From the NCBI GenBank assembly GCA_965644295.1, contig CBFFRP010000408.1, positions 186,001 to 250,000 of the forward strand: a DNA stretch of 64,000 nucleotides, written 5' to 3'. Position 1 is the stretch's first letter. Every line of letters begins with the position of its first letter. This DNA is from Paraphysomonas bandaiensis. Its lineage: Eukaryota > Protista > Chrysophyceae. Shown here in pieces: positions 9,276-56,057 of the stretch. Under the pieces are notes generated by a model, which was not told where the DNA came from, ran no database searches, and saw nothing but the letters and a program-made list of their open reading frames with translations. Position numbers and translations under genes: made by a program.

Positions 9276-9328
9276 ATAATTATCTGTGTATATTATAAAA
9301 ATATTTTTGGTGATTGTGGTGCCTTTAA

Positions 9329-10216: not shown

Positions 10217-10550
10217 TTTTTATTAAAAGTATACTTCTGGTCCTAGTCGTTTTATCTTAATTTTATGGAATAAGTGCTCTCATGATGCTCAGTGGTGTTT
10301 CTAGCAGCTAGAACCAGATACGAGGTATCCCCCCTCGATTTTCGTATTTTAATGTACCAAGTGACACGCAGCCTTAGAGGAATTAGATAGTGATATAGCT
10401 CCGTTTTGACAATAGTGACATATTTTACAATGACTTATTACATGAAATCTCAGTACCACTACATTAACACATTAAATCATTTTCAATCGCTATGATATAT
10501 CGTACGCTTAATACTAATACTGCATACTACCGGAAATTTTTTATAAGGGA

Positions 10551-14660: not shown

Positions 14661-15196
14661 GTGTCAAATATCAAAACACGGTTTGTACTTAAATAACTCT
14701 CCTCAGTGCCTCTACATACACCACTTCGATTGTTCGATATGATTCTGTCCATACCCCTCTGCTCTGCCTGTGTATGTATATGTATGTACATGTATATGTA
14801 TATGCGGCGTATGTATGTATATGTATACTGTACAACGATAATTGTGAAACGATTAACTACAACTCGGTATACCTGAACTACATACGTATTATGCATTGTT
14901 TGGGGACCGTGAGTACGTACCATACCGGCACTCCTTATGACCGTTTCGCAACAGTATATAACCACTATACGACCCTCCCTATACATACATACACACACAC
15001 GTGCACGCATATACACATACATACACATACATTCTTAGGGATAGTATCATAACCTCAGAGCCCACTCACTCACTCCCTGGCACCACATCATCTAACTTGT
15101 ATATCATACTATTGTAGTGTGCCGATTAGTCATTGTGCATACTCTTCTCTTCCAAGCGACAGTATCCATATATAACTGAGAGTCCTACCTGTTAAG

Positions 15197-16659: not shown

Positions 16660-17849
16660 GGTACCACGTATTGTTGTGGTCTGTTCTTGTGTGAAGAGTG
16701 TGATTGCCACCGTGGCGTTGAATGACCGGAAAGCAGTGTTTAGTGTGCCCTGCTGTATTATTTACAAGAAGACCGTGCTAACCTGACGGTATGTTACATA
16801 GTGTTTGAAGTAGCTTCTACAATATCAACGCGTCTAATATTGATATAACAAAATGATTAATAATCAGTTTTTGTATTACGAGTATATTTTGAGCGTTATA
16901 CGTCCTAAAATTACGAAGCCCACTAAATGTCGTAGATTGTGTTTTCTATTCAGAATTTTTCATCATTTTGCAATGCTAGGAATTAGATGCTTAGCTAATA
17001 GCTAACCCTAATCGAATAGTTTGGATACCTGCCACCAATTAATTGTTAAGTACTATATGCAATTAAGGACTTGTTGAGTTCTGCAGTATGATGCGATTAT
17101 ATATTATATAATATATATGGGCTATTGAAGTTAGTAATTGGTTAATAGTATGCAATAGGTGAAATCAACTCATAGGTGCAACGGGAGAATGGAGAATATA
17201 GAATGTACTGACAAATGACAAAGGAAGAAAGGAAGTAAACTCAGCTTCTGATGTCTACGTAAGATATAGGAGTGGCTGGGAAATAGATGTTGCTGAGAAC
17301 AGATGTTCACCCTATGTTAAATTAATATGTTGTGAATTGTTTCGATTAAAAACTATAATTCTTACTTGAAAGTCTATTGTGTTCAACAAATCACGGTTAA
17401 CTTCAGTGAAATGTCCAATTCTAACAGAGTTGACAAAAACCACATTATTTGTTATGGAGATTCTCGTGCTACTAATCGTCTGACTAAAAACTTAAGACCA
17501 GCTACAACACAACAATTTGAACTACCGAACAAGCTTTGACAACTGATAATCAATCACAAAAATACTGATAGAGCATTTACCTCAACGATTCTACACACAT
17601 GAGAGTCCATGCAGTTCATAAATGCTCAAATAAGATGCAAATACGACGTGTGCAGACAGATCACGACAGCAGAGCATTATCACCCATAGATAACACAGAT
17701 AGCAGCAGAGATGATTCCATGTTCACAGTACTAGCATCAATTCTGTTTAACACATGTGCAAATCAGGTGTGCACACAACACGGTTACAGATATAAATGAC
17801 AAGCAGGGGTACCTACATCAATTTCCAGCTCATCCAACGGCGAAGTTCA

Positions 17850-19288
17850 CTAGTTAGTCGGGCGCTCCCACTGAGATACTCCAGTTCCTGAGTTATACCA
17901 GAACGTATTACCGTCTTCTGTCTTGTGCTCTGACCACCCAGCAGGGAGTGGAGGCGGTTTAGTCTGTTGCTGCGCTGGCTGTTGCACAGTCTGCTGCTGT
18001 CCTGTCCATCCCGAGGCCCCAGCACCGTAAGCAGAGGCGTTGGACTGGGAATACCCGCCTCCATACTGCTGCTGAGGTGCCATATATGGGCTCTGCTGCT
18101 GATACATACCTCCCTGTTGTGGAGGGTATCCGTACTGCGGCATACCATACGGCGCTTGCTGCTGGCCATAAAACGCGCCCCCCATACCACCCATGCCCCC
18201 AGGGGCACCCATCATACTCAAGCGATTAGGTCCATTCGCTATGATCTCCTGTACCATTTGTGCCGCTGCTACCACACATTGGGGAAGTCCCGTGATATTG
18301 ACCTTGCAGGGTGTTCCCTCAGGAACATTTTGATCAATTTGGACACGAGCACCGCTTCTGCCTTGAATTAGGTTTATAGTCTCCCCGCCGCGCCCAATAA
18401 TACGCCCCACGTACTGCTTGGCACACTCAATAATCTGTGATCCAGGGTTTGAATTTGCGGGCGGCATCTGTTGCTGAGGCATGCCCATACTGCCATCCAT
18501 ACCGAAAGAAGGAATCCCCATTGGGCCAGGTGGACCATTATCCATCACATATTTTATCATCATCGATGCCTGATGAACAGCATCTTGATTGCCAGTAATT
18601 TGAATCTTTCGGGGGACGCCCTCAGGAAAATCTTGATCAATCTGCACCTTCGCGGCGCATCTAGTTTGGATATCGCGAATGGTGGCCCCACCCGCTCCAA
18701 TAACTCTACCAACAAGGGATTGAGGACAATCAATTTCTTGGGTTATAACGGGTCCATTCAACATGTGTATAGCGGTAGGTCCCTTTTCAAGAACCATATC
18801 AACTAGTTTTCGCGCCGCCGCTATCTGCTCTTGTGTACCTGTAAACGTCACCTCCCTATTAACACCCTCTGGAAAATCTTGATTGACATGAATTTTGCAC
18901 CCAGATCGCGTCTGCATTTCTTGTATAATAGCACCACGTGACCCGATAATCTGTAAATAATATATAAGAGTGTGGATTACATCATATGATTATATACATA
19001 TACACGTATACGACTGACCTGACCGACTTTACTCGGAGACACTTCAAGCTTCTCAAAGAACTCTCCGCTGGCTGTCATATACGGGGGGGCATTGGCAACA
19101 CCGGAATCATTTAGTTTAGGTTTTTTATTGTCGTCGTTGTTGTCATCTGTGTGTTCAGAGGTGAGCTCCTCCCTCTTCCTCTTTAACTCCTGGTCCAGAT
19201 CATTGTCATGATTGTGCTCATGCTCCTCACTGGGGAGGACAGTCGCAGTGTCTTGCGCAGGACTGGATTCAGTGGCGTTATCTGACAT
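17850..19288 (-). CDS. FUBP/KHSRP-like RNA-binding protein with 3 KH domains and a C-terminal WW domain, 2 exons
   Basis: GxxG loops VGQIIGSRG, VGRVIGAGG, VGRIIGRGG; WW motif LPAGWSEHKTEDGNTFWYNSGTGVSQWERP; intron ~18951-19018. Confidence 0.9.
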
Positions 19289-21427
19289 GACAGACTATCA
19301 GTGTTTAGCCGATAGGAGAGATGAGTGTGTGTCTATTTATTGCAGAGGTATATATACACACACAGATTGGGCTCGTAGTACTGCTGTATTATATCTGTGG
19401 TATGGTGTGCCTGCATGAAATATGCGGACTCCACAGATATATCCACAGTCGTGTAGTAAGTAGATCTGCTGTATGTGTGTACATGTATGTGCAGTGCGCG
19501 TATCTCCCAACAATACCACACACTACTTGGACTGTACTTTGCGTATACCGCGTATACCAGGACAACATACGAGAAATCCCAACCACACATGAAAGTCAAC
19601 GCAAAATCATCAGTTTATGAATTTCTTTGTACAAAACTGTATGTTTTGGGAGGTATAAAACCCCATATCCTCGTAATATCGTCCACCCTCATATAGATAT
19701 CCAGATATAGTATAGAGCGATATCTACTCTATAAGCAGAGGCCGTTTCAGGGGATTCCATCAATTTTGTTTGTATTTATCATCAGGATGTTGGCTGTTAT
19801 GCATGAATGAGGGTGTGATACTGAGGCACTGGTCGAATCTATATCTGAGGGTCCTCTCGAGCTAGCTATACTAATATATATGCTCTACACACAAACCTTC
19901 AACACTGGCTTTCAAAGATACATGTAGAGAGAGTAATAGAATTGCTCCGTATATACACTTATATGAATAACAACACTTATAGCTGAATATACTGATATAT
20001 AAAGAGAAGCGGCGAGAGTATAGAGCCTTATGATTTTATCAACTGTATTATGTACAAGTAAAATCGTGGAGTGGAAATAACTGAAATAGTGAATCGATAG
20101 TTGGTACAGGGGTCGTAGACTGCCGCTTGATAAAGTCTTGTATACGTATTTGCAAGTTTTTAGCACTGTATGTACTATTATAGTCTTAAAAATGAAACAT
20201 GGGAACTATATTCAAATCCACAGTATCATACTCTTATTAACAACAGACAAAATTACGTTATCTACAATCTTACATTTGTGGCTCAACTTATATATCACTT
20301 TTATACGTGCTCTTACACGCACTACAATATGTAATATACGTAACCATCACGTAATATAATATTTATTCATACACCTTGCATATGGTACACCGAACTGCAC
20401 TACATAACACAGGTATACAAGAACGGCATACTTTATCCACCATGTATAGATTATTGACTCTACATTTCACAAATTCTTTATCTATTAGTATATATATACC
20501 TAGTCATTATTCCGAGTCTTTAAATAACATGAAATACACAAATACACTATAGATGAGACACAAAAGTCTCTGAGTCTGCTTGCTTCTAGAGTGAAGAAAT
20601 TGTATCTTATTATCACGATTCCGTGATCAAATGAATAAACATCATTCATATTCAATACCAAGCACATCAGTCTAATTCAGTTTATCACAATAACTCATCA
20701 TCAAAGTAGAAGAGAAGATATATTCAGTATTCTCATTGTAGTTGAAGCCTTGTGTACGTAGTTCCAAGCATAGTCAATAAACAATAAGCACTGAAAGAAA
20801 TATGTAAAGTACAACTGTATTACTGAATAATCTGGCAATACACGTGTATCAGCGTGTATATCAAACCCGGATTCTCCAGTAAACTTCTCCAGCCTTAAGC
20901 ATCAATATATATATGTATATAGTATATATGTATAATAATATATATATACACATCATCAATCAATATCTTCATCATTATTCTTCAATATGATAATCCTGTC
21001 TTTCTTTATCTTTTGAAGGGATATAAGTATCAATGATGAGCATGAGTTGTCATAGTCATAATATATCATATACCGTAATGAGAAATATAGTAATAATAAT
21101 ATAATAATCAACCTATGTTGCACAGATAGTATGTACAAACTTCAGATATACAATAGAGAGCTCACATAGTAGCTAAGAAAACCGAATAGCTGGTTATTAC
21201 ATAGACTATAGTATATAGTATATATATGTAATCTTGGTGTGTCCATTAGGGTCAGATGTGGGGAAAGAGTTGACTGATATCTAATATATGTAGCGATATA
21301 TAAGTAGTACACCCAGAACTAGCAAAGCCAATGACAAACTTCAGATGCTAGCAAAATTACCGGTATGAATTAGTCTTTTAACTACTCTGCATAATAAACA
21401 TTTAACTCCCAAATAGTATATGCCTAA

Positions 21428-22354
21428 CTACTCATTTCGCTTGAGATTATTTAGTCGTGCTTCGAGTTCACTCATGGCTGTTCCAGAGGAAGAACCTCCT
21501 CCTGGGGCACTTCCACCACCAACTCCTTCCGCCACAGCTATAGAGTCATGTAGTATTTAGGATGCGTCATGATAAAAACTACATTGCCATTACCTTTTTG
21601 TTCTGTAGGTTCGGCTGTCTGAGCAGATTCCTTTCCTTCGGGGGCATCAGGAACCCCTTCCATCTGTTGGATTCCAAGCTCATCGAGTACCTGCGAAACC
21701 ACCAGTTCTTCCTCTTCTTCTGCTCCATCTTCCTCCATAGCGTCATCAAGAGCATCGCCAATTGACTCCTGCACCAATTCAGACTTCTCATTCTCCCGAG
21801 CAAAATCCATCATTATTTTTTGTAGTCCTGGTACTGATACTTGCTTGTTCATAGTGGTCAAGGCTTTAGTCACTCCTCTCTGCAAACCAAGTTGAACATA
21901 TATGAACATGGTCATAGTATAAATAACGCACCATTGCCGAAGCCATTGCGTCTTGAGACTTCACTGTCTACTAAAGTCGTTAGGTACAAAATTTCATTGA
22001 AATCATATTTTACCAATAATTTCATTGATACTCCATTTAAATGAGATTTCATTTCGATAAAGCGGGATATGTTTCGTCTTGTCCGAACAAGATCTTTAGC
22101 CATCACTTTGGCAGCCGTCTTTATACCCAACGATGAAAGTATAAATAACTTCGTCAAATCAAACACTTATAGCAAGATGAACTTACATACTGATTTTCTT
22201 TGCCTGCTTTTTTAATATCACCTTCCAGTTTTTTCGCATTTCTTTCTAGGTTTTTAATTTCTCTGTCCAGTTCACGAATGGATTTGTTAATCATGCGCTG
22301 ATTTTCCCTAACAATTTCTTTAAGAGTTTTTTGAGGCCCGAATACGTTGCCCAT
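21428..22354 (-). CDS. CHMP2A: ESCRT-III subunit CHMP2A/VPS2, 5 exons
   Basis: MGNVFGPQKTLKEIVRENQRMINKSIRELDRE, AKDLVRTRR, LQKIMMDFARENE, VSQVLDELGI, and C-terminal MIM1-like ELEARLNNLKRNE*. Confidence 0.93.
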
Positions 22355-22943
22355 TTTAGTATAATGCTATACGAGATAAGACACTGCGGGGGTCTAAGTA
22401 TTCAATACGTAATATACAACAAACACAAAGCAGTGTGTTGAATAAGGTACTGCAGATCAGAGAGGTACGCTAATGTTGCTTCTAGCACAGCAGGTTCTTG
22501 TTAAGAGCAAGAGATATGCCGTCCAGGGGCTGCAGTGTGTATGTACTGTATGTTATGGTATGTGGATGATGTACATGTATGTATGATGGGTTTGTATATA
22601 CAAGATACAGTCACAGGGAGTGTTTTTTGGAAGGGAAAAAATGAGCTGAAGAAAAAGAGTCGCCCAAAGAACTCTCCTCTTGTTAGACAGTATACGGTTG
22701 TATATACTGTATATCAGCTGGAGATCGTATTACAGAATACTGCTGTATAAAACAATCGTTTCACTGCTAGTTTGGTAGTCGTCTGTATATTATGTATACG
22801 CAGCAGTAAGCCTCTATGCATAGAGCAGGTAAGTAGCAGGCTCTGGAGGTGGATGTTCAGAGTGTGTTATCTACAAGGATTCCAATGGAATTATCGGAGT
22901 AGTAAACTACAGTGTCTGTGTGGTGTGCGGTAGAACATTAACG

Positions 22944-24629
22944 ATGTCAGATGAATCTATCGACTACACATCTCCGTCATACATACTTCAAAACATCTCT
23001 TATCAGAACCACTTCGAGAAATTTGAAAGCATCTCATCAGACACTCGACTGCGTGTCATTCAAAACATTCGTGATCAAGTCTGCTTCTATGTTGCGTGTG
23101 TATTAAAGGCTTTCGTTCGAGCTGAGCGTGCTCCAACTATTGTTATATACGGCGCAGGCTTTGTGGGCTCCACTATTATAGAGGCTCTTGTGGACTGCGG
23201 ATGCAGCAGTCTATTGAGAATATTTACTAGAGATGAGACTACAATCGCAGCATGGAAAGAAAAGGGTATCAAGTCGACTACACGGTTTAGGAGCGGTTTC
23301 TTTGCGGATATTTTGATACTGTGTGCAAATTTGGCGAGTTTCAGTCAGTTTTGTCGAGATATGAGCCCACATATAACTCCAAAGACTTTTGTAATATCAT
23401 CAGTATTTGGTCTTCAACGACGACGTCTCTTCAGTATTTTGCGAACACCTGGTATATTTCGTGTATTCGTGGAACGCAAAACAAGTCCGTCTCCTGACGA
23501 CAGTCATACCCTACCTCGACTGGCATCTCCCCCACCACCTAGTAAAAGTAAAACCCCAACATCTCCTTTGTCAGCGACCTCGTCCGTACCACTTCGCAGA
23601 AAGAATTCTCGTCCTGGGAGCCCTCCTATGGAGAAGCATCCATCTTCCACACATAAACTAGCTCCATCTACTACTGCAGACTCCTCGAAAATGTCTCCGC
23701 AGGAAATTTCTGCAAGGTTCTTAGCTGGTCGCAAGAATTCTGTTCGGAATTTGATTATTATATTAGAGAATTATTTTATAATCAGCGGGATTCCTGCCAT
23801 AAGCGCACGGAGCGAAGCCCTGGACTCTATTGTTGGATCGGAATCTGTTCTGCCTGCAACAAGACTAAGTTCTGTGGCTGGCTCCACCGTCTCTGCGGGT
23901 GATCCACCTGAAGACACTTTTGAACCTGCTGGGTATTTGTCCCAACAATCGACTGCGTCTATACTATCAACAGGAGAGGTGTCAGACTCGCACGATGGAT
24001 TTAGTAATGCTGTCTCGGAGGAAAATAGTAATGATGACGTTGTCAACAATAAAATACTCGCACGGCAATCGTCACGGCGGCCAGCAATGTTTGTGGATAT
24101 GCCTTCCCATCTTAAGGTAATACGCCGAGCTCTAGGAGAGCTTAACACAAAGTACTGCGAGGCTTTTAAGCAAGAGCTTTCAAGGCATATATTAGTTATT
24201 GACTTGCCTACCGTTCAACAAGACGAGGCGGATGTAAGAAGCAGTCCACTGCCAAAAACAAGAAAAAATACTAGAAGTAAAATCAATCGCCTTCCCACAA
24301 GGGGCATAGTCTCAAATCCTGCACCAAACTGGGAGGAGTCTGTATTACGTGATGAGAAACTCTTAGATATATTTAAGGGAGATTCTGTGTCTTCATATTT
24401 GACAGATGGTAAGAGTGAGTATTTAGATGAAATCGACGCAGAGAGTGGCGATGAAGACGATGGAAACGGGGATACTACTGAATCCGATATACGAGAACAA
24501 CTAACAGAAAGATATTATATCGTTAGAAACGACTCTATTCCTATGGACCCGACTCGTCCACCACCTATGAATTTGCAGCGTATGCCGAAATCGTCTTTTG
24601 TGGATCTGGCACTTATGGGGCAAAAATGA
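22944..24629 (+). CDS. NOXRED1/P5C-reductase-like Rossmann-fold protein with long disordered S/P-rich extension
   Basis: IVIYGAGFVGSTIIEAL (GxGxxG), ADILILC; single ORF of ~561 aa from MSDES. Confidence 0.7.
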   Translation: MSDESIDYTSPSYILQNISYQNHFEKFESISSDTRLRVIQNIRDQVCFYVACVLKAFVRAERAPTIVIYGAGFVGSTIIEALVDCGCSSLLRIFTRDETTIAAWKEKGIKSTTRFRSGFFADILILCANLASFSQFCRDMSPHITPKTFVISSVFGLQRRRLFSILRTPGIFRVFVERKTSPSPDDSHTLPRLASPPPPSKSKTPTSPLSATSSVPLRRKNSRPGSPPMEKHPSSTHKLAPSTTADSSKMSPQEISARFLAGRKNSVRNLIIILENYFIISGIPAISARSEALDSIVGSESVLPATRLSSVAGSTVSAGDPPEDTFEPAGYLSQQSTASILSTGEVSDSHDGFSNAVSEENSNDDVVNNKILARQSSRRPAMFVDMPSHLKVIRRALGELNTKYCEAFKQELSRHILVIDLPTVQQDEADVRSSPLPKTRKNTRSKINRLPTRGIVSNPAPNWEESVLRDEKLLDIFKGDSVSSYLTDGKSEYLDEIDAESGDEDDGNGDTTESDIREQLTERYYIVRNDSIPMDPTRPPPMNLQRMPKSSFVDLALMGQK

Positions 24630-25503
24630 ATCATGTTATTCTTTTATTTGCTTAAGCTATATATTTACTCGATGTCTGTGTTGAACATTTCATCGTTGAC
24701 GATTTAGTGCTTCACTGGTGTACTTGTAGTGAGTGAAGTGTGACCTGTGGTTGCAGCGAATTGAAAGTTACGTAACCGTTAATGACTAGGACCTGTAAAA
24801 TAAGAATGTTAATAGATACTTATATGGGAAATAGCATTAACCACAATACGATGTTCCCAGAGAAAAATGATTAATGCAATGTTTTCTTTTCTATTGTGGT
24901 CCTGCCAATGTAAATGCTATATGCAATGAATACCAACACGTTCTAAAGTTCTTCATATTTTTTACAACTATATATAAAATATTAAACCTTCCGTATTCAA
25001 TTAGAGCTTTTAAGATAAGCTATTTTGTCTGACTATCTAGTCCGCAACTGCTCGTGGTAGCCATGATTGTGATATCAACAAGATAATCTCTACTCTCCAC
25101 TGATTCACTACTTCAGGATCAGTATTATCGTTTTGTGTGAGGGGTTGCTGCATGTCGTTACTATATATGTACATTTTAATAGATATCAACAACAAATCTG
25201 ATGACTCGGGCGAAATTTTTCATATCGTTACTGTCATACTGAAATGTTGCCATTCAGGTAATAGAAAACAGACTACTACTAGATACTAGACTCATTCGTG
25301 TGTACTGTGCACTTGTTAGTATATAACGCTCGAAGGCAGATAATATCTACTGCTATTCATTGGCACTTAATACATTGAAGTAATGGACAAAGTTATGTTT
25401 AACGGCCTTTTAGTTTAAAACGGCTAGTGGCAAGTTTTATGCAGGTCGAATAACACCAGTTCTATTCAATCCTTACAAGGTGTCAAAGATAACTCACACC
25501 AAT

Positions 25504-25844
25504 TTATTCGGGACGAGTGTACTCAGTTGCCAATTCTCCACGAAGGAAATGCTTTCTTGAATCACCAAACAATCTGACATCGGGAGATGAAGTCATGAAG
25601 TAAATACCATAGCTGGGAACAAATATAGCCATAGCAATGCATATTCCCATGACAGGATATGCCCCTTCATCAGAAAGCCAGATTTGCTTGAAAGTCTTCT
25701 CCTGAAACTTTCCAGTCCTTATTTTTGCGGTGCCTCCCATGTGTCTGCAATAATAACTCAACTGGGCAATAAGCGAATAGGTCCCTGATCATACCTGCAC
25801 GCAACTTTACTTCTAGAAAGAATTCTCCCTGCTGAAAACATCAT
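25504..25844 (-). CDS. B12D/NDUFA4-like small mitochondrial membrane protein, 2 exons
   Basis: Presequence MMFSAGRILSRSKVACR, intron, then WLSDEGAYPV-TM-SPDVRL typical of the B12D/NDUFA4 family. Confidence 0.75.
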
Positions 25845-26358
25845 CTTGACAGTTGTGGTGTATAGAAACTGTTAGGAGTAGTGTCTCTAATATATGTAAG
25901 GGGTGCAGTGAGTATTGTTGCAATGCCACTCTGCAATAATTCGGGCTATGAATGCAAAATATGTGCAAGCGATGTGCATAGCATACAGTGACGGTATACG
26001 TAGAGCTCCTATGCTCCTATACATACCCAACTGTTGCAATTCTAACCACAAACTGAACTACTCTAGAATACAATAATAGAATACAGTGCATTCGACATAC
26101 TGTCGAACTGTTTTTAATAAAAAGTTGCAGTTTTCAGTTTATTTTGAAATTTCGGATTTTTAGACCTCAAATATGGCGTTTTCTATGAATGTGTTTCAGT
26201 ACATTCGAAAACTATTTAATTAAATTAAATACAACTCAAACTATAGCATTAAGACACTGACATGCGTGCCACACCACCCGCCTTGCATTAAAACAAATCA
26301 AAGAATTCCATTGTGTACAGAAAGAGTTCCGTTATAAAGTGCATTGAATAAAGTCGTC

Positions 26359-33162: not shown

Positions 33163-33512
33163 ATAAGTGTCACTTGTGTAGACGTCTTTAGGCCCTGACG
33201 AATAAACAGGCATCCGGGAATGGGCTCACCTCAAAAGCATCCAGGACAGGGCCCACCTGAAGGGTAACCGGGGTATTGGGCTGCCTGCTGAAGTCAAGCA
33301 TCCGGGATGTTCACCTTAAGAACTCAGAGCGGAAGTGGTCGTACCTTAGTGCTTGCGGCGACGCACAAACAACTTCCGTAGCGTTAAATAGTAGGAAAAA
33401 ATAAGTGTTTACTGATTAGCTGATTAGTTACAGGTAGAGGTTAGTTTGTCTAGCATTCATTTAGCTACTACGTTGGTGCAGGTTTTTAACGCCTCTTGCT
33501 AATAATAAGACA
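33163..33512 (+). mobile_element. Family B dispersed repeat (Helitron-like), copy 1
   Basis: Close reverse complement of ~40857-41172; contains three GCATCC(G/A)GGA subunits. Confidence 0.75.
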
Positions 33513-34559
33513 TTCAATATATGAAGAATATTTCCTCATTTTTGTGAAGAAGCTAGCATACATTAATATTAAAAACTATTGCTCTTTCTTTTCTTAATTT
33601 AGGAACGACAGCCATTTTAAGCAATGTGCAAATAAAATACGGTAGCAAACGAACTACTGTATGTATGAGCATTTTCTCATTGTTATTTTGGTGTAATCAC
33701 TTCTCAGCAAAGATTGATGCTTCGAAACCAAAATATTGATGGCATATTCGAAACCACGTACAGATAGATATTTAACAGAAAAACAAAGATAATTCACAGA
33801 CGTTACATATGTATATGAAACCTATCAGAAAAACTATACGTCGAAAGTACAAACCCTAACCCTAAGTTAGTTGATGTTAGTTTTTTAAGACAAGGTAATA
33901 ACTTTCCAGTAATATTCTTTGGGGTATTGTTGCGAAGCCTTAGTTATGAAGATTGACCACTTACACTGACATCACAACGCTTTTTTTCACCAAAAGGATA
34001 GAATATAACTTGGTGTGTTTGAGGATTTGGTTTTAAAAAGTTGAGTCATCATTGTGATTTCCCTAAATGTGTATGTAATGAAATCACATTCAACTGACTG
34101 TCAATATCATAATTAAGATGTAGAAGAAAGACAGTTGTTTATGCTTGAAGTTTGAACCGAATATTGAAGTTGTATATCAATAATTTCCCGGTCCTACTAC
34201 GAGCGTTCTGTTGAACACTATTCAGGTCAAAAACATTTTTTAGACGTAATGGGGATAAAGAGTTAATTTAGTAGACCTGATAAACTTAACGCCTTCCTAC
34301 GACATATTTTGAGTTATCAGATTGGTAGCTCTGTGTCACGACTACAAAGGCTCGGACTTCCCTGCAACGTGATATGCTGATGAACTATGCAGTCGTGATA
34401 CTCTACGATCACTCGTAAATAGTAAAAGGGGGCTAGCAAACAAATAATGGAAGCCGCATATTCGTGAATCCGCAGAGTACGAATATTCTTATTAGAACAT
34501 TTACATAAAATATTTTCTCAATATAGTATATTAGTTGAAACGAAAACAAAAGCATTTAC

Positions 34560-39780: not shown

Positions 39781-39993
39781 TTATTATTATTAGCAATAGA
39801 TGTTTAAGAGCCAATGCTTAACTCTGATATCCTACTATTTAGCGCAATGAAGCTGCTTGTGCGTCTCTGTAAGCACCAAGGTGCAACCACTTTCTATCAC
39901 TCAAAGCAAACGAAGTGAGATTGTTGTTATACCTGACATCTGCTGACTTCAGAATATTCGAGTTCTTAAAGGACTTCAGCAGGCAGCCCAATA
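39781..39993 (-). mobile_element. Family B copy 2 (fragment)
   Basis: Shares ttattagcaat, aagcaccaaggtgcaaccactt and gacttcagcaggcagcccaata with the other copies. Confidence 0.7.
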
Positions 39994-40333
39994 GTCAATA
40001 TCGCTTGTGAGGTATGTGAGATTCTTTTATAGCTCTCTACATATCTTAATTATGTCGTCAGCGGAGATTGTTGTGACGCACATGTCGATCTCCATATAGC
40101 CTCACAATGCAGCGAGGACCCTCATCAACAGTGATCCCGCCGATGTCATATAATGGCCCTTAGGAAGCTGTGGAACTGCACCGGACATGGTCACGAGAAA
40201 CTGTCCAATTCTCATTGGAATGCGACGTTGTAATGTGATGTATTGCATGTATACAATATCTGCATTCATTAATTGATGCTAGAGTATGTTCCCATGTTTG
40301 AAATTTGTTTTTGAAATATTTATTATTAAATGA

Positions 40334-40678
40334 CTAGGTTTTTACACCAAATTGACTAGATCCAATATAATATATCCCTAAGATGAACAGCCTGGATGCT
40401 TGACTTCAGCAGGCAGCCCAATACACCATATGCCCTTGAGGTGGGCCCATTCCCTGTTCCCGGATGCCTGTTTATTCGTCAAGGCCCAAAGACGTCTACA
40501 TAAGTGTCACTTATTTGTGCCCCCCCTGTACCACACACAAGTATTTGGTTATGAGTGGGCTAAACAATATCTGCTGATTATATATGCGGCTTACATTAGT
40601 TTCCAAGAGAAATATCTCCCGTACTTATCCACCTGTACACCACGAAAAGGTGCGAGTCCGACTTTGTTGACTCTGTTG
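40334..40678 (-). mobile_element. Family B copy 3, with putative Helitron 3' CTAG end
   Basis: ggatgcttgacttcagcaggcagccc...gacgtctaca...caccacgaaaag homologous to copies 1, 4 and 5; minus-strand end tttggtgtaaaaacCTAG|t. Confidence 0.7.
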
Positions 40679-40856
40679 TTGTAGTATTATGGTATCTTGT
40701 GTTTTTGACCCTTGAAGTTAGAGAGCTGAATTCAGTAAAGAAGACCCTTTAATAGATTAAAGTTGTTGTATAATTTCTTATCATTATAATTTCTTTAATG
40801 AATGTCTGATTAGTAGCAATAGGCGTGTAAGTGTCAGAAATAATGTATATATTGGA

Positions 40857-41308
40857 AGTCTTATAATTAGCAACAGGCGTTAAAAACCTGCACCAACTTA
40901 GTAGCTAGATGAATGCTAGACAAACTAGTTAGACCTCTACCTGTAACTAGTCAGTACACACTTTTTTTATCCTATTATTTAACGCTACGAAAGCACCAAG
41001 GTGCGACCACTTCCACTCTGAGTTCTTAAGGTGAACATCCCGGATGCTTGACTTCAGCAGGAAGCTCAATACCCCGGTTACTCTTCAGGTGGGCCCTGTC
41101 CCGGATGCCCGTGAGGTGGTCCCATTCCCGGATGCCTGTTTATTCGTCAGGGCCTAAAGACGTCTACACAAGCATTCGGCTATGAGTGGGCAGAAGAATA
41201 TCCGCTGACTATGGTTGCGGCTCACGTTAGTTTCCCAGAGAGAATCCCTCCAGTAATTATCCCTCAGACCTCAGAACACCACGAAAAGATGCGAGGCCGA
41301 CATTGTTG
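40857..41308 (-). mobile_element. Family B copy 4
   Basis: Inverted near-copy of 33163-33512 plus an extension shared with copy 3. Confidence 0.75.
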
Positions 41309-44640: not shown

Positions 44641-45370
44641 GTCTGTGCCGTGTTACAGTTATAAGCTACTTTAAGTGTTGTGTTATGTACGTGTATAATA
44701 CACAGCCACAGACTGGAACTGCATGCAAGCCTGAAGGTGTGACAGCTGTATGTTCTCTCACTTCGCCTCTTAAAGTACCTCTATGCGCAGTATGGCAGAC
44801 TGTTGAGTGAGGTGCGGTGAGTTCCAGTTACATAGCAGCTCATACTATACTGTAGTCCAGTGTATACCGGTATACCGCATGAAATACAGATCTTGCAACG
44901 TACAGGAGGGTATTGTATACTATATACGTATTTTCATGTATTCTCAACGTATAAAAAGTCCCTTCTGAATCTCTTCATGTATGGGCAGTCAGCATCTTAT
45001 TTTTTCGGTAATTAATTGAAGCAAAATTCTTCTATATAACTACAATACAACTACGGCTGTAATACAGATAATTGTTGTCTCAATATTAGAGGCATCTTGG
45101 AATAAAAATATACGAAGGATGCCGATCTCAATAAAATTTTGTCCATTTCGTCCAATGCAGCTGCCGATTTCTTCCTACTTTAGAGGAGTCGTCCACATGC
45201 TTGTATAGATCCAGCGAATAGCGAAATGATTAGCGTCCAAACAACTGCATCAGTAAAGCCGACATTCCGCGAAACTGTCAAGATAAAGAAAGCTAATTCT
45301 TCCGTATCCAGCCAGCATCTTGCAATATCTAACACAGAATAACCCCCTAGAACCCTCGTATATCTCTATG

Positions 45371-45372
<2 letters not shown>

Positions 45373-45401
<29 letters not shown>

Positions 45402-45448
45402 TGTATGTATGTATGTATGTATGTATGTATGTATGTATGTATGTATGT
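45373..45448. repeat. (ATGT)19 microsatellite
   Basis: Perfect tetranucleotide run. Confidence 0.97.
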
Positions 45449-46562
45449 TGAACACTCTCATGTATATACACTCATATACACACTCTCATGTATGGGTGAA
45501 CAGACAGCTGGCGATTTAAAAAAAAGAAGTGGGAGAGCGACAAGTTGCAAGGTGGCTAAACGACAAACCCTTATTGAAACGGCTGCGCTGCTTGGCATTC
45601 GGGAATGGTATTGGAGGGAAAGTTGAATGAACCCTACCGTCGAGAATAAGCTGAAGTGCCTGAAGAAGATGGCTTTCATTATCTCCGAAGATTACACACT
45701 CTGGAGAAAGCCAAAGGTGATGAGATGGAGCTCTTACTCAGGAATGGTTCAATCATTCCGAATACCCACCTGAATGGCTTGCATTCTATATTCTTGGACT
45801 TCCATCTGGGGACCGAGCTCTTGAGAACCACAGGAGTAGTAGTGATAAAGCAACCAATTCTAAGCGCAAATTCGACTTGGAAAGTTCGACTGTCCTCGGT
45901 AGAGAAATGTCGAACAGGAAACCAAGACAGCGCAGGAATGTTACCAGCCCAGAGAGAGACTGACAGAGCAGTGGCCCATCAAAAAAATGAATCATATCAT
46001 TATACATATGACTGGTATGGAAGTCGACCAGACTCCCTTACACACAGAAAGGAAGAGCGGCGATCAAACTCATTGAGAAACAGATTTACGTTATTGGGAT
46101 AATGGGATTATTCTCGGCGATCAAGAGATTAACAAGCAAAGACTGAGCGATCTATATGAGAATTGTTCAATTTACTTGGCTGCGAACTACAGGAGTATCG
46201 TGCGAGACTTAAAGATAAGCCCTTTTAAAATTGAAATTCCTAATTGTCTGAGAAATATCGGTACTCATTTGACGCTATTGTGGCCGAAAGAGTACTGCAA
46301 CGAATAGAACAATCATAAGAAAGATCGTCTTGCATACTCATTCTCTAAATGATATAATGGTGTTTACGTGTAGTGCACCTGTGTCGTAATATTGTAATAG
46401 TATCCGATGGCAGTCTGACTTTCACGAATTTATCTTGTATCTTGCTTGTTAAATTAGCAACTAGCCACACGAGCATAGTATTTCGTCCATTGTTTTGAAC
46501 ACGTCAACATATGGCGAGGATAATGCATTTATCCTCCGGACAACGCATGTAATTATGTACTC

Positions 46563-48165: not shown

Positions 48166-48719
48166 CTTAGTCAGTCTGCCTTTAAGCGTCCAGTGGACTG
48201 CGAAAAGAGCCACCGTAGCGACCAAACTCGAGGCAAAATACACCCACAGCACAGTAAACTCCGCCATACTCAGATATCAATTGCAGTAGAGCTAAAGGTA
48301 CACCATACTGGAGCACGATAAGACAGACCTCTGGTTGGTCTGTTGCTGTCTCTACTCCCCTCGACCTGCAGAGAGATGCCAGATTCTCATTACAGCAGGG
48401 CGCATCTAGCCGGGAGAGACAGCAGCACACTAGATTGAAATACAGTACTACGGCACTGTATATTGGATAGATATGGGGACTGCTGTATACGATGGTATAC
48501 TCAGAATACAGCCACTTAACGGTATCTGTCATATGGAAGCGTGTATGTATATGTATGTGTATGTGTATGTGTATGTATGTAGACAGAGCAGCTCTTTCAG
48601 TTGATAGCATCACGGAGCAGCACAGCAGTGCTGACATAAGAAGATGCCCGCTCGATCTCATGCTGCATAAGAGAGAGTGATATTTATACCTTAGTGTTGT
48701 GTCCAGGAGGAGCAGCAGC

Positions 48720-51406
48720 ATGTCAACAGCTGTAGCTCTAGGAGATAAAGTGAGGAAGAAGGAGGCTATGGAGACTCTCGTCGAGGAGATATCGAGAGGG
48801 GAGGATGAGGGTCTCGCACCGTCACTGCGGAGTGCACTTGAGCGTGGCTGGGGCTTTAAAATAACTGATACGATATCTGAAGCGAAGGAGAGGCGCGAGA
48901 AGGAGATCGACAAGATATGCTCACGACACTACAGCGACTTTCTCGCATCTGTAAAAGAACTGCTAGCTATGAGAGGGTCCGCAGACATGATATACAAGTC
49001 CATCACTGATGTTCATGAAGTATTTGAAGCTGCGTATCAAGATTTGTCAGGCGTGTTGAAAACTTTGGAGATGCTACAGACAGAGCGGGAGAATAGCCGT
49101 CAAGCCCTTTTGGATATCGAGCGATGTAGAGAGCTTACTGGGCTTATGGTAAAAGCTAAAGAGTTTATTGCTTCAGAAGATTACTACCGCGCGCTGTCGA
49201 CGATTGAGACTTTGAGGGACGAGTTAAACCGGGTTGGCATGCGTCCATTTGCCTCTATTTTACTGACCTGGCTAGCCTCCCTGACTGACCAGCTGTTGGC
49301 GGCATCTAAGCTTGACCTCCAGGCATGGCTAGGCGAGATGCGTGACCGCAATTCTCTAATTGGAGAGACAGTGTTACACTTAAGCGCAGCACTCTTCCTA
49401 CGTGAAACTGAAAGGCCAGGGGATGACTTGGATGCTTTTTCTGATCCCACAACTATGTCACTTGAGATGGTGCACCGTCTTTCCGAAATGTACGACTGGG
49501 ACCTTCTAGATTACGACTCTCAAACGAACTCCACCATCCCTGAGGACTTTACAGCTGCTCTTCCGGCTGAGGGAAGACGATATTTTGAGAGTATTACAGA
49601 ATCGTTAGGCCCACTGCACAAGTCGCTACATATGCATACCCAGTTGGGCAAGCTACCTCAGCTGCAAAGTATATATTGCGAGAGTCGAGAGCTAATCATT
49701 GTTCACAACTTAATCAACAATAGTCTGGAGCCTCGAATAGCCAAGCATGGGTTTTCTGTCGCACTTGCAGATGTGCTCCGTTCTGTGGTGGGATTCTTCG
49801 CGGTTGAGAGTATCATTAGACGCTCTGTGAACAATGCAGAAGGAGGGGGCGTTTTCACCTGGAACCAATTGAAGGATCTCTGGGTCATTGCCTGCACTCA
49901 AGTTAGGGAGTTTTGTTTCAAGCACGCGGGTGCCATTGAATCCCCCGCTGCAATGCTGTGCGTGAAGGAACAATTGCTCCTGGCCAGCGAAACTCTCGCG
50001 GACGACGCCTTCGGGCTGAAGGATGGTGCACTCATGGAAGCGTGCGGAGTACTTTGGGACGCTTTTCTTGATCTACAGGTACAAAGTACCAGAGATGCGT
50101 TTACGAATTACGTGACATATCAGCCCATACACGTTACGTCAGTAGATATGCACGAAAGTCGAATCAAGCCATTTTTCATTGACAAAGCCCATTTCTCCCT
50201 TGACGACCACATGGGTGGGGGAGGGCAACATAGAGCATCCACTCATGCTAATCTGGATGCACTAGAAGAGGCACAGATGGAGTCTTTGCGGAATGCTTCG
50301 AGCACTCTTGATAGCAGTGATGATATTAACGGCACAGAGGATTCTGTGATTGGGTTCATCGGTGATCACTCTACATTTGTTCCTCATACCTTGCCATTCT
50401 CTGAGACTGTCCCGTCACTGATGAGACACCTTACATTTTTAGTAATTAGGTTTTCCCAATTTGTAGTACATAATGAGGGACTTGGTGAGCGGGGTGCGTC
50501 GGTCTGCAGTACTGTGGAGCGGGCCATAAACGCCATCGTCGATATGTTCAGAGAAGAGCTCACACGAGATGGTCCAGAAACTCCTCTATCTAAAGCATGT
50601 CAGATATCAATTGACGCCGCGACGTTGTCCTACTGTTGTATGGAGTTCAGGAGTACGATCGCAAACATGCTTGTTCAAGCCAACTGGATTGAATCTATTG
50701 ACTCACACCTGGATGAGGTTATAGTACGATGCAAAACCAATCTGGACAAACTGTCCCTTCAGGCGCAGGACTTGATATTTGAGCTTCTGAATACGAAGGT
50801 TATCGACCTTCTCGGCGACCTTTGTTTTGTGAATTGGGTTCCATCTTTGCTTCCTGCAGGCCCTCATGAGTGTATCGAGGAGATTGTGGACTATCTACGA
50901 GTCACCTTTATGTGGCTCACGTACCTCCCACAGACTGTGAGAGATGCAGCGCACTTCACATGCTGCTCTAGGATTAACCAAGACATATTAACATTCTTAA
51001 TTTCTCCGAAGGTGCAGCACATGAACATGCTGAGCATAAAGGCCCTGCAACTTGATTTCAAACATTTAGATGACTTTTCAAGTAGTTGTGGTGTACCTCA
51101 GCTGAGGGAGTGTTTCTCTGAAGGTCGCGGACTAATAAATGCACTTCTGCATCGGGACCTGCACAGATTTGGCGAGAATCCTGTAATACGAAGAGCAAAT
51201 TTTCCGGTGCTTGATCCCTACAAGCTTTCCTTATTAGCAGAGAAGGTATGTCCAAAGTGTTGAGTATATGTACTTCAATCTGATAATGCATGGCATATTA
51301 GGTGGTTCCTCTCCCCCCAGGAGCACAAACTCACTCTTCGATTCCTATTTATGACAAGAAAACTTTGGCGACTATCAGTAAATCTTTAAAAAATGCCAAG
51401 TCTTAG
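48720..51406 (+). CDS. SEC15: Exocyst component Sec15/EXOC6, 2 exons
   Basis: EIDKICSRHYSDFLASVKELL, YYRALSTIE, VGFFAVE, LPFSETVP, EIVDYL, CFSE..LINAL; short last exon 51302-51406. Confidence 0.88.
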
Positions 51407-52002
51407 AATTTTTATATAAGAATAATACATAGTGTTTGTTGATGTTTTTTGTGTCAAGTACTAAACGTACTTTCACATTGCGATGAAAATTACAATTCTG
51501 AATGAATAGATGATACGCTGTCGCTATTTCAGTGTGATTTGTGCTTACATTTCATAATATTTGTCTCGCTTTCTAGGTGTAGGGCGTGAAAAACGATGCT
51601 AAATTTATTATTCACTATCCGCAACAGCCACCTATACTTACAGCGAAAATATATACAATATAAGATGTTTGGTAAAGTAAAACTAGAACTGTTGGAAAAT
51701 AAAACAGCATCTAATCCAACAATATCAATGATGTACAGTTATATTGGTAGATGTGGTTGAAATATATGCACTATTGCTAAAGAATTTCGGGACAAGGGAC
51801 CGAGTCAATAATATTGATTGTATGGTATCTTGGGCAGTCAGAATGTGTACAGCTATGATGAATCAAACAATCAAACGAACTGCAAATCCTTTCAACATGA
51901 CTGCTCTTTGGTTTCATGACAACCATTTTCAGTTTATAGTTTTTGTGAGAGCGGTTGATGCGTGTTGTTACCATATTTGTACATTTCAATTGACACAAAT
52001 AT

Positions 52003-52052
52003 CAGGGCCTGGTAACCATTAATGGCCCATTAGTAGTAGTCCAGTTCCCGGA
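52003..52052 (+). mobile_element. Left-end fragment of the same hAT MITE family as 46563-46653
   Basis: cagggcctggtaaccattaat...gtagtccagttcccgg matches the MITE 5' half. Confidence 0.75.
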
Positions 52053-52146
52053 AATTATAATTATCGTAAATACATAAGTAGATAATACCTCTCATAAGAA
52101 ATAGTGTGATGCTCGTTCACTTATCGTTCATTTATAACTACTTACA

Positions 52147-52512
52147 CTAGTTTTTTTACACCAAAATTAGTGTGACTAGTAGAGGTAGTAGTACAAAAAT
52201 GCCTTGTTATTAGCAATATGCGTTTATAAGGGTCAGTGGTTAACACTGATATCTTAACATTTAACGCTACGAAAGAAACTTCTGTGTCACTTCAAGCACT
52301 CAGGTGCAACCACTTTCGCTCTATCACACAGTGAGCACAAGCAGAATGTTGACATACCTTCCATCTGCTTACTTCAGGATTATTAAGTCCTTAAGGTGGG
52401 CCGATTCCCGTGTGCTTGACTTCAGCAGGCAGCCCATAATACCCCGAATGCCCTTGAGGTGGGGTATCTCCGGCACTTATCCCCCAGAACACCTCGAAAA
52501 GGGTGTGACTAC
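52147..52512 (-). mobile_element. Family B copy 5 with hairpin + CTAG Helitron-like 3' end
   Basis: Homology to the other copies; hairpin acaccaaaattagtgt (52158-52173) 7 nt from CTAG (52147-52150), followed by T on the minus strand. Confidence 0.7.
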
Positions 52513-52601
52513 GAAATTTAACTATTTTGACTATAGGCTAAATAATATTTCCACAAAGTTTTAAATATGTCCCTCGCCCACACGAAGTTCTTTTATGCAT
52601 C

Positions 52602-53119
52602 ATGCGTATCAATGCAACCCGTTTAACAGAAAGTGATTCTGAGTCTGAAGAACAAGTGTCAGACCCAGAATCAGATTGTCATCGTTCGTCACCAACATTC
52701 GCAGTTGGTGAACTAGTTTCTAATATACACAATTTAAGAGGTATTATTTCTGAGGTAAGCAGCGACATGTATGTGTAACACATATATTTAATCAATAAAT
52801 GTAAGAGATATATATACTCAGGTACACAGCGACAATACTTACGATATCAAATATAATGATGGACAGTATGACAACAACCTAGCGGCAAGTTACTTGAGGC
52901 ACATAAAAGGTTAGTATATATAATAATATGATTATTATGTAAACGTTATAATATATTATATATTATACAGTAACTTCGTCAAAGAAAAGGACTAAAAAAC
53001 AGCAATGGGAAATAGTGACAGAGCCTACAACCGAATGGGTGGATCAAGGCGCTCTCTCATCTGAGAATGTTGTGACCGGAAAACGTCGACGTAGTAGTGG
53101 GGTATCGTACAAAGAATAG
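52602..53119 (+). CDS. Transposon-associated ~129-aa protein: acidic patch + Tudor-like domain + CHZ-like basic motif, 3 exons (possibly 5'-truncated)
   Basis: Exons 52602-52754, 52822-52909 and 52971-53119 with GT-AG introns splice in frame without stops: ...ESDSESEEQ...FAVGELVSNIHNLRGIISEVHSDNTYDIKYNDGQYDNNLAASYLRHIK...LSSENVVTGKRRRSSGVSYKE*. Confidence 0.65.
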
Positions 53120-53360
53120 CTTTATATTATGCTTGACGGAAGAGCTTGAACTGTATAATATATGTGTGTAGTCGGTGACTTTTATTGCTGTAAAACTGAA
53201 GTATTATGGAAGAAATTAGTAAAAAATATTATAAATAATACTTTTCACACTGTCATTAACTTCATAGTTACTTATTGTGCATAGTTATACCCTTTTCCGA
53301 CCATCACCAAAAATTTCACCAGGTTATACATCAAAACCCAGGTTTTGGTATTACCTCGAC
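52970..53360 (+). mobile_element. Family A TIR transposon, right arm
   Basis: Homologous to ~9563-10203; ends CCAGGTTTTGGTATTACCTCGAC|tta. Confidence 0.72.
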
Positions 53361-54057
53361 TTATGATGTGTACTAGTCGTCGCATTATCATAGGATACTA
53401 GGTTTTGATGTGAAATGTGTGGCTGCATTATAGAGCAACTAAATGCAATAGTTTAGGGCCACTGAAGCAATTATAACGTTAATGACGAATAAAGTACACA
53501 GTAGTTTAAATAATATTTTTACAATAGATTAATGAAGTGTATAAAATATAGTAGGTAAATAAGATAATTAGTTATTGGCTGACTGTAAATATATATATAT
53601 CCAATATATACTGAAAAAAGTCTATCACAATTACAATTTAATTAAATTGAGTGTGGTGTGTACAGAGTGCAATATGTAAATTACTGATTGTATAGTACAG
53701 TTAATAACTACTTATCGAGAAAACAATATTTCAAGTTGCCTGACAATATTGCTAATCATAAAGTGATAACTACTGTCGCCACACACTTTAGACTGATATT
53801 CACCAGCCAGTACTTTAAGTCTCTAATTTGAGTTGTAAATGTTCTAAGTTTGGATATTTCTTAATCGCTGACGTACCGCAGTTAATTTTAAACACATTCG
53901 GCACATTTATACGGATATAATAATATATAAAATAGTGAAAGGGAATTTCATTCGAAAGTATGTGCCGACATGGATATATCATTCATACCGTTGCATAAGA
54001 CAATATATTCTTGCAAGCGATGTTGGCTAATAGTTTATTATTAATTACACTGTTGTA

Positions 54058-56057
54058 CTACGTTTCGTTCTCAGATATCACCTCTATCAATGGTACTCGT
54101 TTCGGCTGGTCATCACAATTTTCACTCTGCGCCGGAGTTATGGACAAAGCTTCCAACCCAAGACTTGCATTCGCAACATCACTGCTATCTGTGTCATGTA
54201 ATTGTACAGACACATTCTCTTCTGTATTACTTTCATTATCGCTTTCAGTACTGCTATTCGAACTTGTAGTACTACTCTCATAACTTTCACTGTCTTCGTC
54301 ACAAGTGTACGCTCGTTCAATATCTAGTAAACCAAGCTGCAAATCACCTTTTGTTATAAATTTTTTCACTTCAGCTAATTCATTTCCCAGGGCCTTACAT
54401 ACAGAACTTCCATTCTCCAGCCTAGAGAGCCACACACAGTAGTCGTCAATGAACACTTTATTCAGAAGGTAATGTGTTTCGGTTCGCTCAAATATTCGAC
54501 GTATGTTCAATAAACACTTCAGCACCATTCGCTGGCCGGCGAGAAGAATTCTAACAACATCAGCAAATATCTTCCTTATCAGTGGCCACATTCGCAAGTA
54601 CGGATATATGAGGGCGCGTCTCGCACAGAATACCGCTACTTGGTGTAAAGTAATACTGTCTGATATTGACACTTCAGTGCTAGTGGATTCGGTACCAATT
54701 GCAATTCCTTCAAGTGTCTTCGATTTTTCGCATTTTCTTTCCAAATTGGTAAGTTGAGAACGCGAATTCGAACTTTCGTCGTTCCGTACTTCGTAGTATT
54801 CCAACCAGGACAAGGAAGGGCTTACCCTTGATATGGTGTAGGCAGACTCCACTGTAGGTTCTCCTTGAGTAGTGCGGCAGTCATACGCATAAGCAAATAA
54901 AATATCTACAAGAGAAAGAAGGACACTGCGCTCTTCGACAGAAGACGAAGGAATTAGGTAAGACCTGTTGTAACGTTGTGACGCGTAGGAAGTGTATAGT
55001 AGTACAAATACTAACAGCGTGTCGTATGTATAAATACAAATTTCCCACATGTACATTACTATTGCTAAAAAACTACCAGTGTGGTGAATATATGAGTGCA
55101 GTACCTGCGAGGCAACTTTCGTTGTGTCTCCTGCTCATCATCTGAATACCCTCCAATAGCATCGAACACTGATGCCTCACGTTGATCCTCAACAACCGAC
55201 AAGGGGGGTTCTGATTCGGCAGAGGGCGGGAGCGCTGTGGTAACACTGTCGCTTTCACATGCACTTGAAGATACAGGCTCTGTGGCTGATGGAGGGCCCA
55301 AAGGGCTCTCAGAAGGGCCAGAAGCTGTAGAATGATGAACCTTTAGCTGCTCCCAGTACATATCCCACGGAGCAGTATACGCCATAGACTCAATATATAT
55401 GGCATCATTTTCACCCTCAATCCAGTCACCAATATACCTATCTTCATTAAAATCAACACCTTCTGCTTGTAATCGCAAAATTCTTCGTTCCCGATAAGGC
55501 ACTGAGTCAGGACAACGGATACTTATCATATCTACCAATTCATCCCGAAGGTCGTTAAGCACACCTGAGTACCGCTGATTGAATCCGTAAGTATTACACC
55601 CAAGGGAAATATTCGGAGTCTCCAGGTCATTACTTTCAGAAATACTTTCTCCCATGCCAACTTCTACATCCGCAGAGTCGGTGGGGTTATCGTTAGTGGT
55701 TTCACTCACAACTTCAATCGAAGGAAAAGAATAAGTAGAGTCATCTTTCAATTTCCTCCTTAGCATTAATTGAGACGACAAATCGAGACCAGGAAAATAC
55801 TCCCCTTTATTTTTTTTTGGTAGCGTTGCAATGATGACTCCATTTTCTTCCTCAGGATCGTATTTAGCCGAGCATCGCTCATCTTCCTCCACTTCAGAAG
55901 GCAACGAAAGCTTTAAGAGGTAAGGCTTACAGAAAAAAGTAAACTCAGTCCCATCTGCGATAATTTCAGCATCCGACACACGAATATAAGGCACGAATAT
56001 CTTCACCACAACGCAGTCATCTGACTGAGAGACGCTAAACTTCGGAGTCAAAACCAT
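54058..56057 (-). CDS. SHQ1: H/ACA RNP assembly factor SHQ1, 2 exons
   Basis: MVLTPKFSVSQ, FFCKPYLLKLSLP, GEYFPGLDL, YGFN, LVDILFAYAYDCRTTQGEPTVESAYTI, RRALIYPYLRMW, YLLNKVFIDDYCVW; intron ~54966-55103. Confidence 0.93.

Follow-up and report, generated by a model that had tools for sequence, protein, structure and literature searches.

Chromodomains bias where chromoviral integrases insert their elements. Fusions of transposases with reader domains have been catalogued across eukaryotes, and mostly involve Chromo and PHD domains (bioRxiv 10.1101/2021.11.30.470311). Duplications of 3 bp are made by both Zator and ISAzo13 (PMC10045372), and the CHZ motif, of about 24 residues, is required for the binding of H2A-H2B by Chz1 and HIRIP3 (PMC10854748). 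The locus considered here lies in a window of 64 kb, the whole stretch of DNA that was analysed, which is AT-rich (41.9% G+C). A first-pass annotation of this DNA had described a TIR transposon carrying, as cargo, a compact gene for a chromatin protein with a Tudor-like domain and a CHZ-like motif. We conclude, with a probability of about 0.88, that the locus is the dead remnant, truncated at its 5' end, of a cut-and-paste TIR transposon that has many copies in a marine microbial eukaryote, and that its exons encode the last 128 residues of the transposase of that element. A transposase fused to a chromatin-reader-like domain is a known kind of protein, and the window copy itself is ordinary transposable-element debris. 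As in the chromodomains of chromoviral integrases, in hAT-Chromo and in PHD fusions, what is predicted is a small barrel of the Royal-family type placed C-terminally on an inserting enzyme. In contrast to the Chromo and PHD fusions, the barrel here would be Tudor-like, would sit on a DUF7869 transposase and would be followed by a conserved basic terminal motif.

The window copy reads as three exons and two introns with GT..AG borders, which splice into a frame of 390 nt (129 codons) with no internal stop, as the first-pass annotation had described (Table 1). The stop codon ends 243 bp before the end of the element, close to the 240 bp given earlier. Upstream, the copy breaks off between 52603 and 52604; matches to the window from the marine metagenome contigs L001, L002 and L003, and from all RNA and DNA contigs, begin exactly at 52604. 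The ATG at 52602 straddles this junction, and only its G (52604) belongs to the family, in which the reading is ...EEQE-RINATRL, compared with M-RINATRL in the window. The ATG is a fortuitous product of the junction. No other transposase fragment was found in the window by tblastn with the family proteins, no left terminus for this copy was found within the window with up to 3 mismatches, and no Rfam family was found in the window. A promoter of its own, a start and a catalytic domain are all absent from this copy, and most likely it has no activity.

Table 1. Positions in the window of the truncated copy, its parts, the adjoining repeat and the second copy
Feature	Position	Strand	Basis
Unrelated high-copy repeat(s) abutting the truncation point	52003-52603		Related to 33173-33522 and 39784-41172
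Remnant (759 bp, 5' end missing) of a TIR DNA transposon with many copies: last three transposase exons, 3' UTR, subterminal region and right TIR	52604-53362	+	Matches of all relatives begin at 52604
First retained exon: acidic Ser/Asp/Glu linker and first strands of the predicted Tudor-like domain	52602-52754	+	Frame; comparison with P0003 and L003
Intron, 67 nt, GT..AG	52755-52821	+	Removed in RNA contigs of X12 and X18
Second retained exon: remainder of the predicted Tudor-like barrel (TYDIKYNDG...)	52822-52909	+	Frame; tail alignment; model
Intron, 61 nt, GT..AG	52910-52970	+	Length arithmetic; X12 record 10
Last exon with stop: basic linker and conserved C-terminal motif (about 53033-53116)	52971-53119	+	Alignment with P0107 and P0019 tails
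3' UTR and subterminal region, where repetition within the family is highest	53120-53337	+	Summed contig depth
Right terminal inverted repeat, 25 nt, AAG terminus	53338-53362	-	Repeat search; contigs from other copies stop or part from the window at 53362-53364
Copy 2: decayed, internally deleted, non-autonomous derivative	9327-10218	+	Repeat and alignment comparison
Copy 2, left TIR	9327-9351	+	
Copy 2, exon-3 remnant	about 9557-9721	+	
Copy 2, subterminal region	10033-10203	+	
Copy 2, right terminus remnant	10210-10218	+	

Relatives of the exons indicate what the window copy has lost. Databases and structure tools were queried with the separate exons, with the 51-aa core and with homologous proteins. 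An exhaustive phmmer search with exon 1 recovered P0003, a metagenome ORF that reads ...AARKREEQE-RINATRLTGSDSEAEE..., and because P0003 continues upstream in frame, the frame of the family runs through the ATG of the window. The other matches of that search (P0001, P0002 and P0004) were set aside as repeat-protein noise. P0003 and its relatives come from marine metagenome contigs, including Tara Oceans (L001-L004). One of these contigs, L003, carries on a single 1810-nt DNA a DUF7869 ORF (Pfam E 4.6e-27) and, downstream of it, exons 1 and 2, each with its following intron, and the beginning of exon 3; it is 97.2% identical to the window over 52604-53065. Farther upstream, P0042 (contigs L005-L007) adds 133 N-terminal residues and one further intron. 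From its start to the equivalent of 52604 the distance is about 1996 nt, which fits the 2057 nt of upstream transcript described below. By overlapping fragments, we estimate that the full transposase would have a length of roughly 860 aa.

The same arrangement is found in proteins encoded without interruption. A search with the 439-aa DUF7869 ORF of L004 gave 221 relatives, which stem from run assemblies and marine metagenomes and nearly all carry PF25273. Among 120 of these are three single ORFs (P0107, P0019 and P0023) that encode DUF7869, then an acidic linker and then the same tail as in the window. Their phmmer domain i-E values to the window peptide are 2.6e-14, 1.6e-9 and 2.7e-8, respectively. 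A word-based protein search with the tail region of P0107 returned P0107 alone. In the JGI metagenome contigs, a protein scan with P0003 found no relatives, and a scan with the terminal repeat found no match.

These relatives bear directly on the proposal that the exons form an expressed gene of their own, encoding a 129-aa Tudor and CHZ accessory protein carried as cargo by a TIR element. A stop-free spliced frame that opens with an ATG is what such a gene would show, as is a position just inside the terminal repeat that recurs in the second copy. However, the ATG straddles the truncation junction, all relatives run upstream in frame into the DUF7869 transposase, the exons stand at the 3' end of a 2404-nt RNA contig, and P0107, P0019 and P0023 are single ORFs, so that we consider a cargo gene very improbable. 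There is no separate chromatin gene; the exons are the 3' end of the element's own DUF7869 transposase gene. The first-pass annotation had itself raised the alternative that the peptide is the C-terminus of a single-copy host gene. A C-terminus is indeed what was found, and it belongs to the transposase of a multicopy TIR element, not to a single-copy host gene.

Individual copies of the transposase gene are damaged in various ways. Relative to the homologue P0008, both L003 and L004 are shifted in frame by 1 nt at a run of G residues, which lies between the catalytic region and the linker (near ...GGIVPDPG / CFEGGGVYDPF...). Possibly the copy that is sampled best is defective, or else both assemblies contain the same error. 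We also considered a 38-nt intron that would bridge the two ORFs of L003 and L004, and prefer the frameshift because the stretch removed by that intron encodes the conserved ...PF(K/R)T(R/K)LFG... of P0009 and P0010. Compared with the window, exon 2 of L003 carries 2 inserted nucleotides, and L001 and L002 differ from exon 3 by 14 mismatches and 4 gap columns (frameshifts), with introns no more changed than exons. Since frameshifts in exons are as frequent as changes in introns, the individual copies are decaying neutrally, which is the pattern of a transposable element. L001 and L002 are in addition deletion derivatives whose transposase ORF has lost about 330 nt between breakpoints that show short microhomology. 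The retrieved contigs include no full-length element with its two termini, and the left half, any partner gene and autonomy rest on other contigs.

In the related contig L008, a divergently oriented 354-aa ORF with no Pfam match and a 153-aa ORF with a faint zinc-ribbon match (E 0.017) lie at 792-2453 (minus strand), beside the DUF7869 gene (3244-5484). This arrangement suggests a two-gene element layout. No usable inverted repeats were found in L008, which stops 99 nt past the gene.

Contigs of the runs X12, X17 and X18 and of the DNA run X1 were compared over 50900-54500. The first three behave as RNA, with an intron of the neighbouring Sec15 gene (51244-51299) removed and zero depth over single-copy intergenic DNA. 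Intron 1 is spliced out in the X12 and X18 contigs, with a GT..AG joint from 52752 to 52820. A 2404-nt RNA contig (X12 record 10) carries the spliced exons at its 3' end, in its positions 2058-2404, which correspond to 52604-52752 and 52973-53078 of the window. Intron 2 has been removed as well, since these 347 nt equal exon 1 from 52604, exon 2, and exon 3 up to 53078. Both introns proposed in the first-pass annotation are thus removed in RNA, the first as seen from the joint itself and the second from length arithmetic. The remaining 2057 nt or so of the contig, upstream of exon 1, do not fit the window.

The RNA in these contigs does not come from the window copy. The window has T at both 52644 and 52724, whereas all RNA contigs that cover exon 1 have G at the first of these positions and C at the second, and so the transcripts derive from a paralogue. 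No RNA contig over exon 1 carries the T alleles of the window, although contigs drop rare variants and some weak transcription of the window copy is therefore conceivable. One contig has a loose poly(A) end just after 53239, and the transcripts of the paralogue are polyadenylated near 53250. The paralogue is therefore transcribed, spliced and polyadenylated inside the terminus.

A further possibility is that the window copy is expressed from the repeat upstream of it, and that the resulting Tudor tail, which lacks the transposase, acts as a regulator of the family, for instance by competing for the chromatin target. In its favour, the frame of the remnant is intact and only two differences in exon 1 separate it from the expressed paralogue. 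However, the exon-1 RNA contigs all carry the alleles of that paralogue, the sequence into which each of them continues upstream does not resemble the window, and the intact frame is explained by youth, so that we would give such a regulator hardly any chance of being real. The 129-codon frame has stayed open because the copy is young, as its 97% identity to L003 indicates, and not by selection.

In the DNA run X1, the summed contig depth is about 76-82 over the single-copy flanks, 860-3450 over the exons and 13,000-26,000 over the 3' subterminal region. Relative to the flanks, this amounts to about 11-45 times for the exons and 170-350 times for the subterminal region, a rough proxy in which summed contig depth is not the same as copy number. 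On this estimate, exons are present in roughly tens of copies and the terminus in roughly hundreds.

The 25-nt terminal repeat AAGTCGAGGNAATACCANAACCTGG occurs exactly twice in the window, once on each strand, with a chance expectation of 0. The second occurrence belongs to copy 2, which the first-pass annotation had noted at 9329-10216 and which we place at slightly wider limits. Between the two copies, 52949-53125 aligns to 9542-9721 at 83% identity and 53154-53315 to 10033-10203 at 80%. The homology begins inside intron 2, and exon 3 onward is the only part in common, which agrees with the earlier description, as do the in-frame stops in the exon-3 remnant of copy 2. This remnant also carries indels. 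A TIR transposon family, as claimed before, is thus borne out by two copies with the same terminal repeat and with a subterminal region contiguous with the last exon.

These observations also bear on whether the sequences could be a multicopy host gene family, such as a domesticated transposase with a reader tail, with the TIR contributed by an unrelated MITE lying downstream. The paralogue is well represented in RNA contigs, and transposase-reader fusions can be domesticated, as in SETMAR (bioRxiv 10.1101/2021.11.30.470311). However, in each of the two window copies the last exon runs directly into the subterminal region and TIR, which form the most repeated part; copies decay by frameshifts, and copy 2 retains a terminus at either end and is flanked by a duplication. 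We therefore regard a host family as quite improbable.

Copy 2 is the only complete element available. Its AAG termini (AAGTCGAGG...CTCGACTT) are flanked by TTT on both sides (9324-9326 and 10219-10221), an agreement seen in one decayed copy, with a probability by chance of about 0.02 at this base composition. We also considered a TA duplication of the Tc1/mariner type with termini AGTCGAGG, and rejected it; TA stands to the left of copy 2 and to the right of copy 1, but TT stands to the right of copy 2.

Assignment to a superfamily depends on several weak signals that agree with one another. The NCBIfam model transpos_ISAzo13 (NF033519) matches one of the 68 family members used for the model of the core (E 0.0039), and Pfam DDE_Tnp_ISAZ013 matches none of the 68 at E up to 1. 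In one ESM Atlas cluster of DUF7869 proteins, 11% of the members carry Pfam DDE_Tnp_ISAZ013. The curated threshold of a named transposase family was passed by no member. The element is probably a DDE/D TIR transposon related to Zator/ISAzo13, with which it shares TIRs, a predicted core of the RNase H-like D-D-E/D type and what may be a 3-bp duplication, as read from the single complete copy. It differs in its weak sequence link, in a protein far longer than transposases usually are, and in having introns and a reader-like tail. Tc1/mariner transposases (Mos1, Metnase/SETMAR) match the catalytic core best in structure, but no Pfam Tc1/mariner domain was detected, and the sole complete copy has TTT/TTT and not TA/TA. 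Retroviral integrase cores score within 1 Z unit of the Tc1/mariner matches.

The catalytic core was modelled with AF2 from residues 1-560 of P0010 and 68 aligned relatives (pLDDT 88.9). From residue 214, the strands and helices of the model follow the order b1-b2-b3-a1-b4-a2-b5-a3, which is RNase H-like. All 68 sequences share D220, and at least 90% of them share each of D298, E336, D337 and D339. These acidic positions fit the model elements E214-221, E292-297 and H336-349, which place them on b1, after b4 and on the helix after b5. The third catalytic acid may be E336, D337 or D339, going by conservation. The best PDB match of the core by Foldseek is the strand-transfer complex of the mariner Mos1 (E 3.1e-4). 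With VIA, the core reaches Z 9.1 to the transposase domain of Metnase, of whose 204 residues 176 are aligned. Mos1 and the cores of retroviral integrases score Z 8-9, and all 50 of the matches listed are DDE transposases or integrases. On the strength of the predicted fold, we conclude that DUF7869 is a domain of the DDE/D transposase type. A full-text literature search found no papers on Pfam DUF7869.

N-terminal to the core, a weak RFX-like winged helix is detected in 15 of the 68 members (best E 2.8e-5). Other modules occur sporadically among the 68 DUF7869 proteins, namely PTM_DIR17_Tudor in one member (E 9.5e-5), SAP in two and HeH/LEM in one. This variety of DNA-type and chromatin-type modules suggests that domains suited to tethering have been gained repeatedly by DUF7869 proteins.

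The tail of P0107, P0019, P0023 and the window peptide is conserved in two parts, of which the first follows the pattern F.VG..V.N.HNLRG.I.E...TY.I.YNDG..D..L...L..I. A model of residues 440-556 of P0107, built from a shallow alignment, is confident only over residues 12-68 (pLDDT 73-91), where it forms a small beta-barrel. The closest VIA match is the Tudor domain of PHF1 (Z 7.7, rmsd 1.4 Å, 52 of 56 residues), followed by the Tudor domain of ERCC6L2 (Z 7.4) and then by PHF19/20, TDRD3, LBR and the MRG2 / MRG chromo-barrels. These Z values are middling, with KOW and SH3-like barrels within 1 unit. Foldseek of the tail model gave no match below E 0.001, and its top rows are Tudor, PWWP and chromo-barrel domains. 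The Pfam matches in the Tudor clan are all sub-threshold (Tudor_5 at 0.068 for the window core, Agenet at 0.029 for the P0107 tail and TUDOR at 0.11 for P0023), and ESM Atlas features of the tail point weakly to a Tudor-like domain.

A Tudor-like barrel in the tail is thus supported by the model, and the Tudor-like domain claimed in the first-pass annotation stands in this form, as a predicted fold that resembles the PHF1 Tudor domain. By eye, the candidates for an aromatic cage are only two conserved Tyr and one His. We did not accept the label of a methyl-lysine reader, as the sequence gives no clear sign of the usual aromatic cage. The DNA-binding C-terminal domains of integrases are also SH3-like barrels.

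The second conserved part lies at the very end of the tails and reads EEW..G.....N[VI][VI].GKR.R....Y.K in the alignment of P0107, P0019 and the window. In the tail model this motif is disordered. To the eye, N-[VI]-[VI]-x-G-K-R-x-R...Y resembles the CHZ motif, a likeness that we treat as a lead only. Like the CHZ motif of Chz1 and HIRIP3, the tail motif is short, charged and predicted to be intrinsically disordered. The difference is that no match to the CHZ motif was obtained by Pfam or by PDB profile. Pfam CHZ does not match exon 3 or the homologous tails at E up to 10, and a profile of the terminal motif matches no chain in the PDB, including Chz1, at E up to 10, by HMMER filters that can drop weak short matches. 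We read the conserved basic C-terminal motif as real from its alignment, and do not place it in the CHZ family; of the histone-chaperone motif proposed earlier, what remains is the resemblance between short motifs. The KRRR stretch has the typical look of a nuclear localisation signal.

From these parts we suggest how an intact element of this family may work. The reconstructed transposase consists, in order, of the weak RFX-like winged-helix region, the DUF7869 core of the DDE/D type, a long charged linker, the Tudor-like barrel and the basic C-terminal motif, and its gene is transcribed toward the right terminus, with the stop 243 bp inside it. The ends of the element may be bound by the transposase, perhaps through the winged-helix region, and the D-D-E/D core would cut and paste the DNA. 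Where the element is intact, its transposase may be tethered to chromatin by the Tudor-like barrel together with the basic tail, which would bias the choice of insertion site, and KRRR may also serve as a nuclear localisation signal. Copy 2 is an old, internally deleted and non-autonomous derivative that has kept both ends and part of the last exon.

More specifically, the barrel and the basic motif could be two parts of one chromatin tether that steers a DUF7869 DNA transposon to a particular nucleosome state, by analogy with integrases that carry a chromodomain. One part would be a reader of a histone mark or of DNA, and the other an anchor on H2A-H2B or on the acidic patch. We hold this tentatively, as a possibility with somewhat less than even prospects, nearer to doubtful than to probable. 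We know of no described cut-and-paste counterpart of the chromodomains of chromoviral integrases.

For annotation, the consequence is that a 129-aa protein should not be called at this locus, which is transposable-element debris between the host genes Sec15 (48699-51263, plus strand) and SHQ1 (54058-56057, minus strand). More broadly, DUF7869, with its predicted DDE/D transposase fold, is part of TIR elements that marine protists carry in many copies and express. One DUF7869 lineage, ending in a predicted Tudor-like domain and a conserved basic motif, is a candidate for chromatin-guided insertion of a DNA transposon.

The surroundings of the truncated copy offered some minor observations. Near the 3' end of Sec15, the intron at 51244-51299, of 56 nt with GT..AG borders, is removed in all three RNA runs, and because it is spliced, the long ORF at 48699-51263 is not the complete coding sequence. 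The repeat family that abuts the truncation point has a summed DNA contig depth of 25,000-68,000, compared with about 76 for single-copy DNA. Copies of this repeat at 33173-33357 and 40988-41172 form inverted arms of 185 nt, 93% complementary, around 7.6 kb with importin-like ORFs. Microsatellite arrays of the (ATGT)n type lie at 45349-45461 and 48525-48588.
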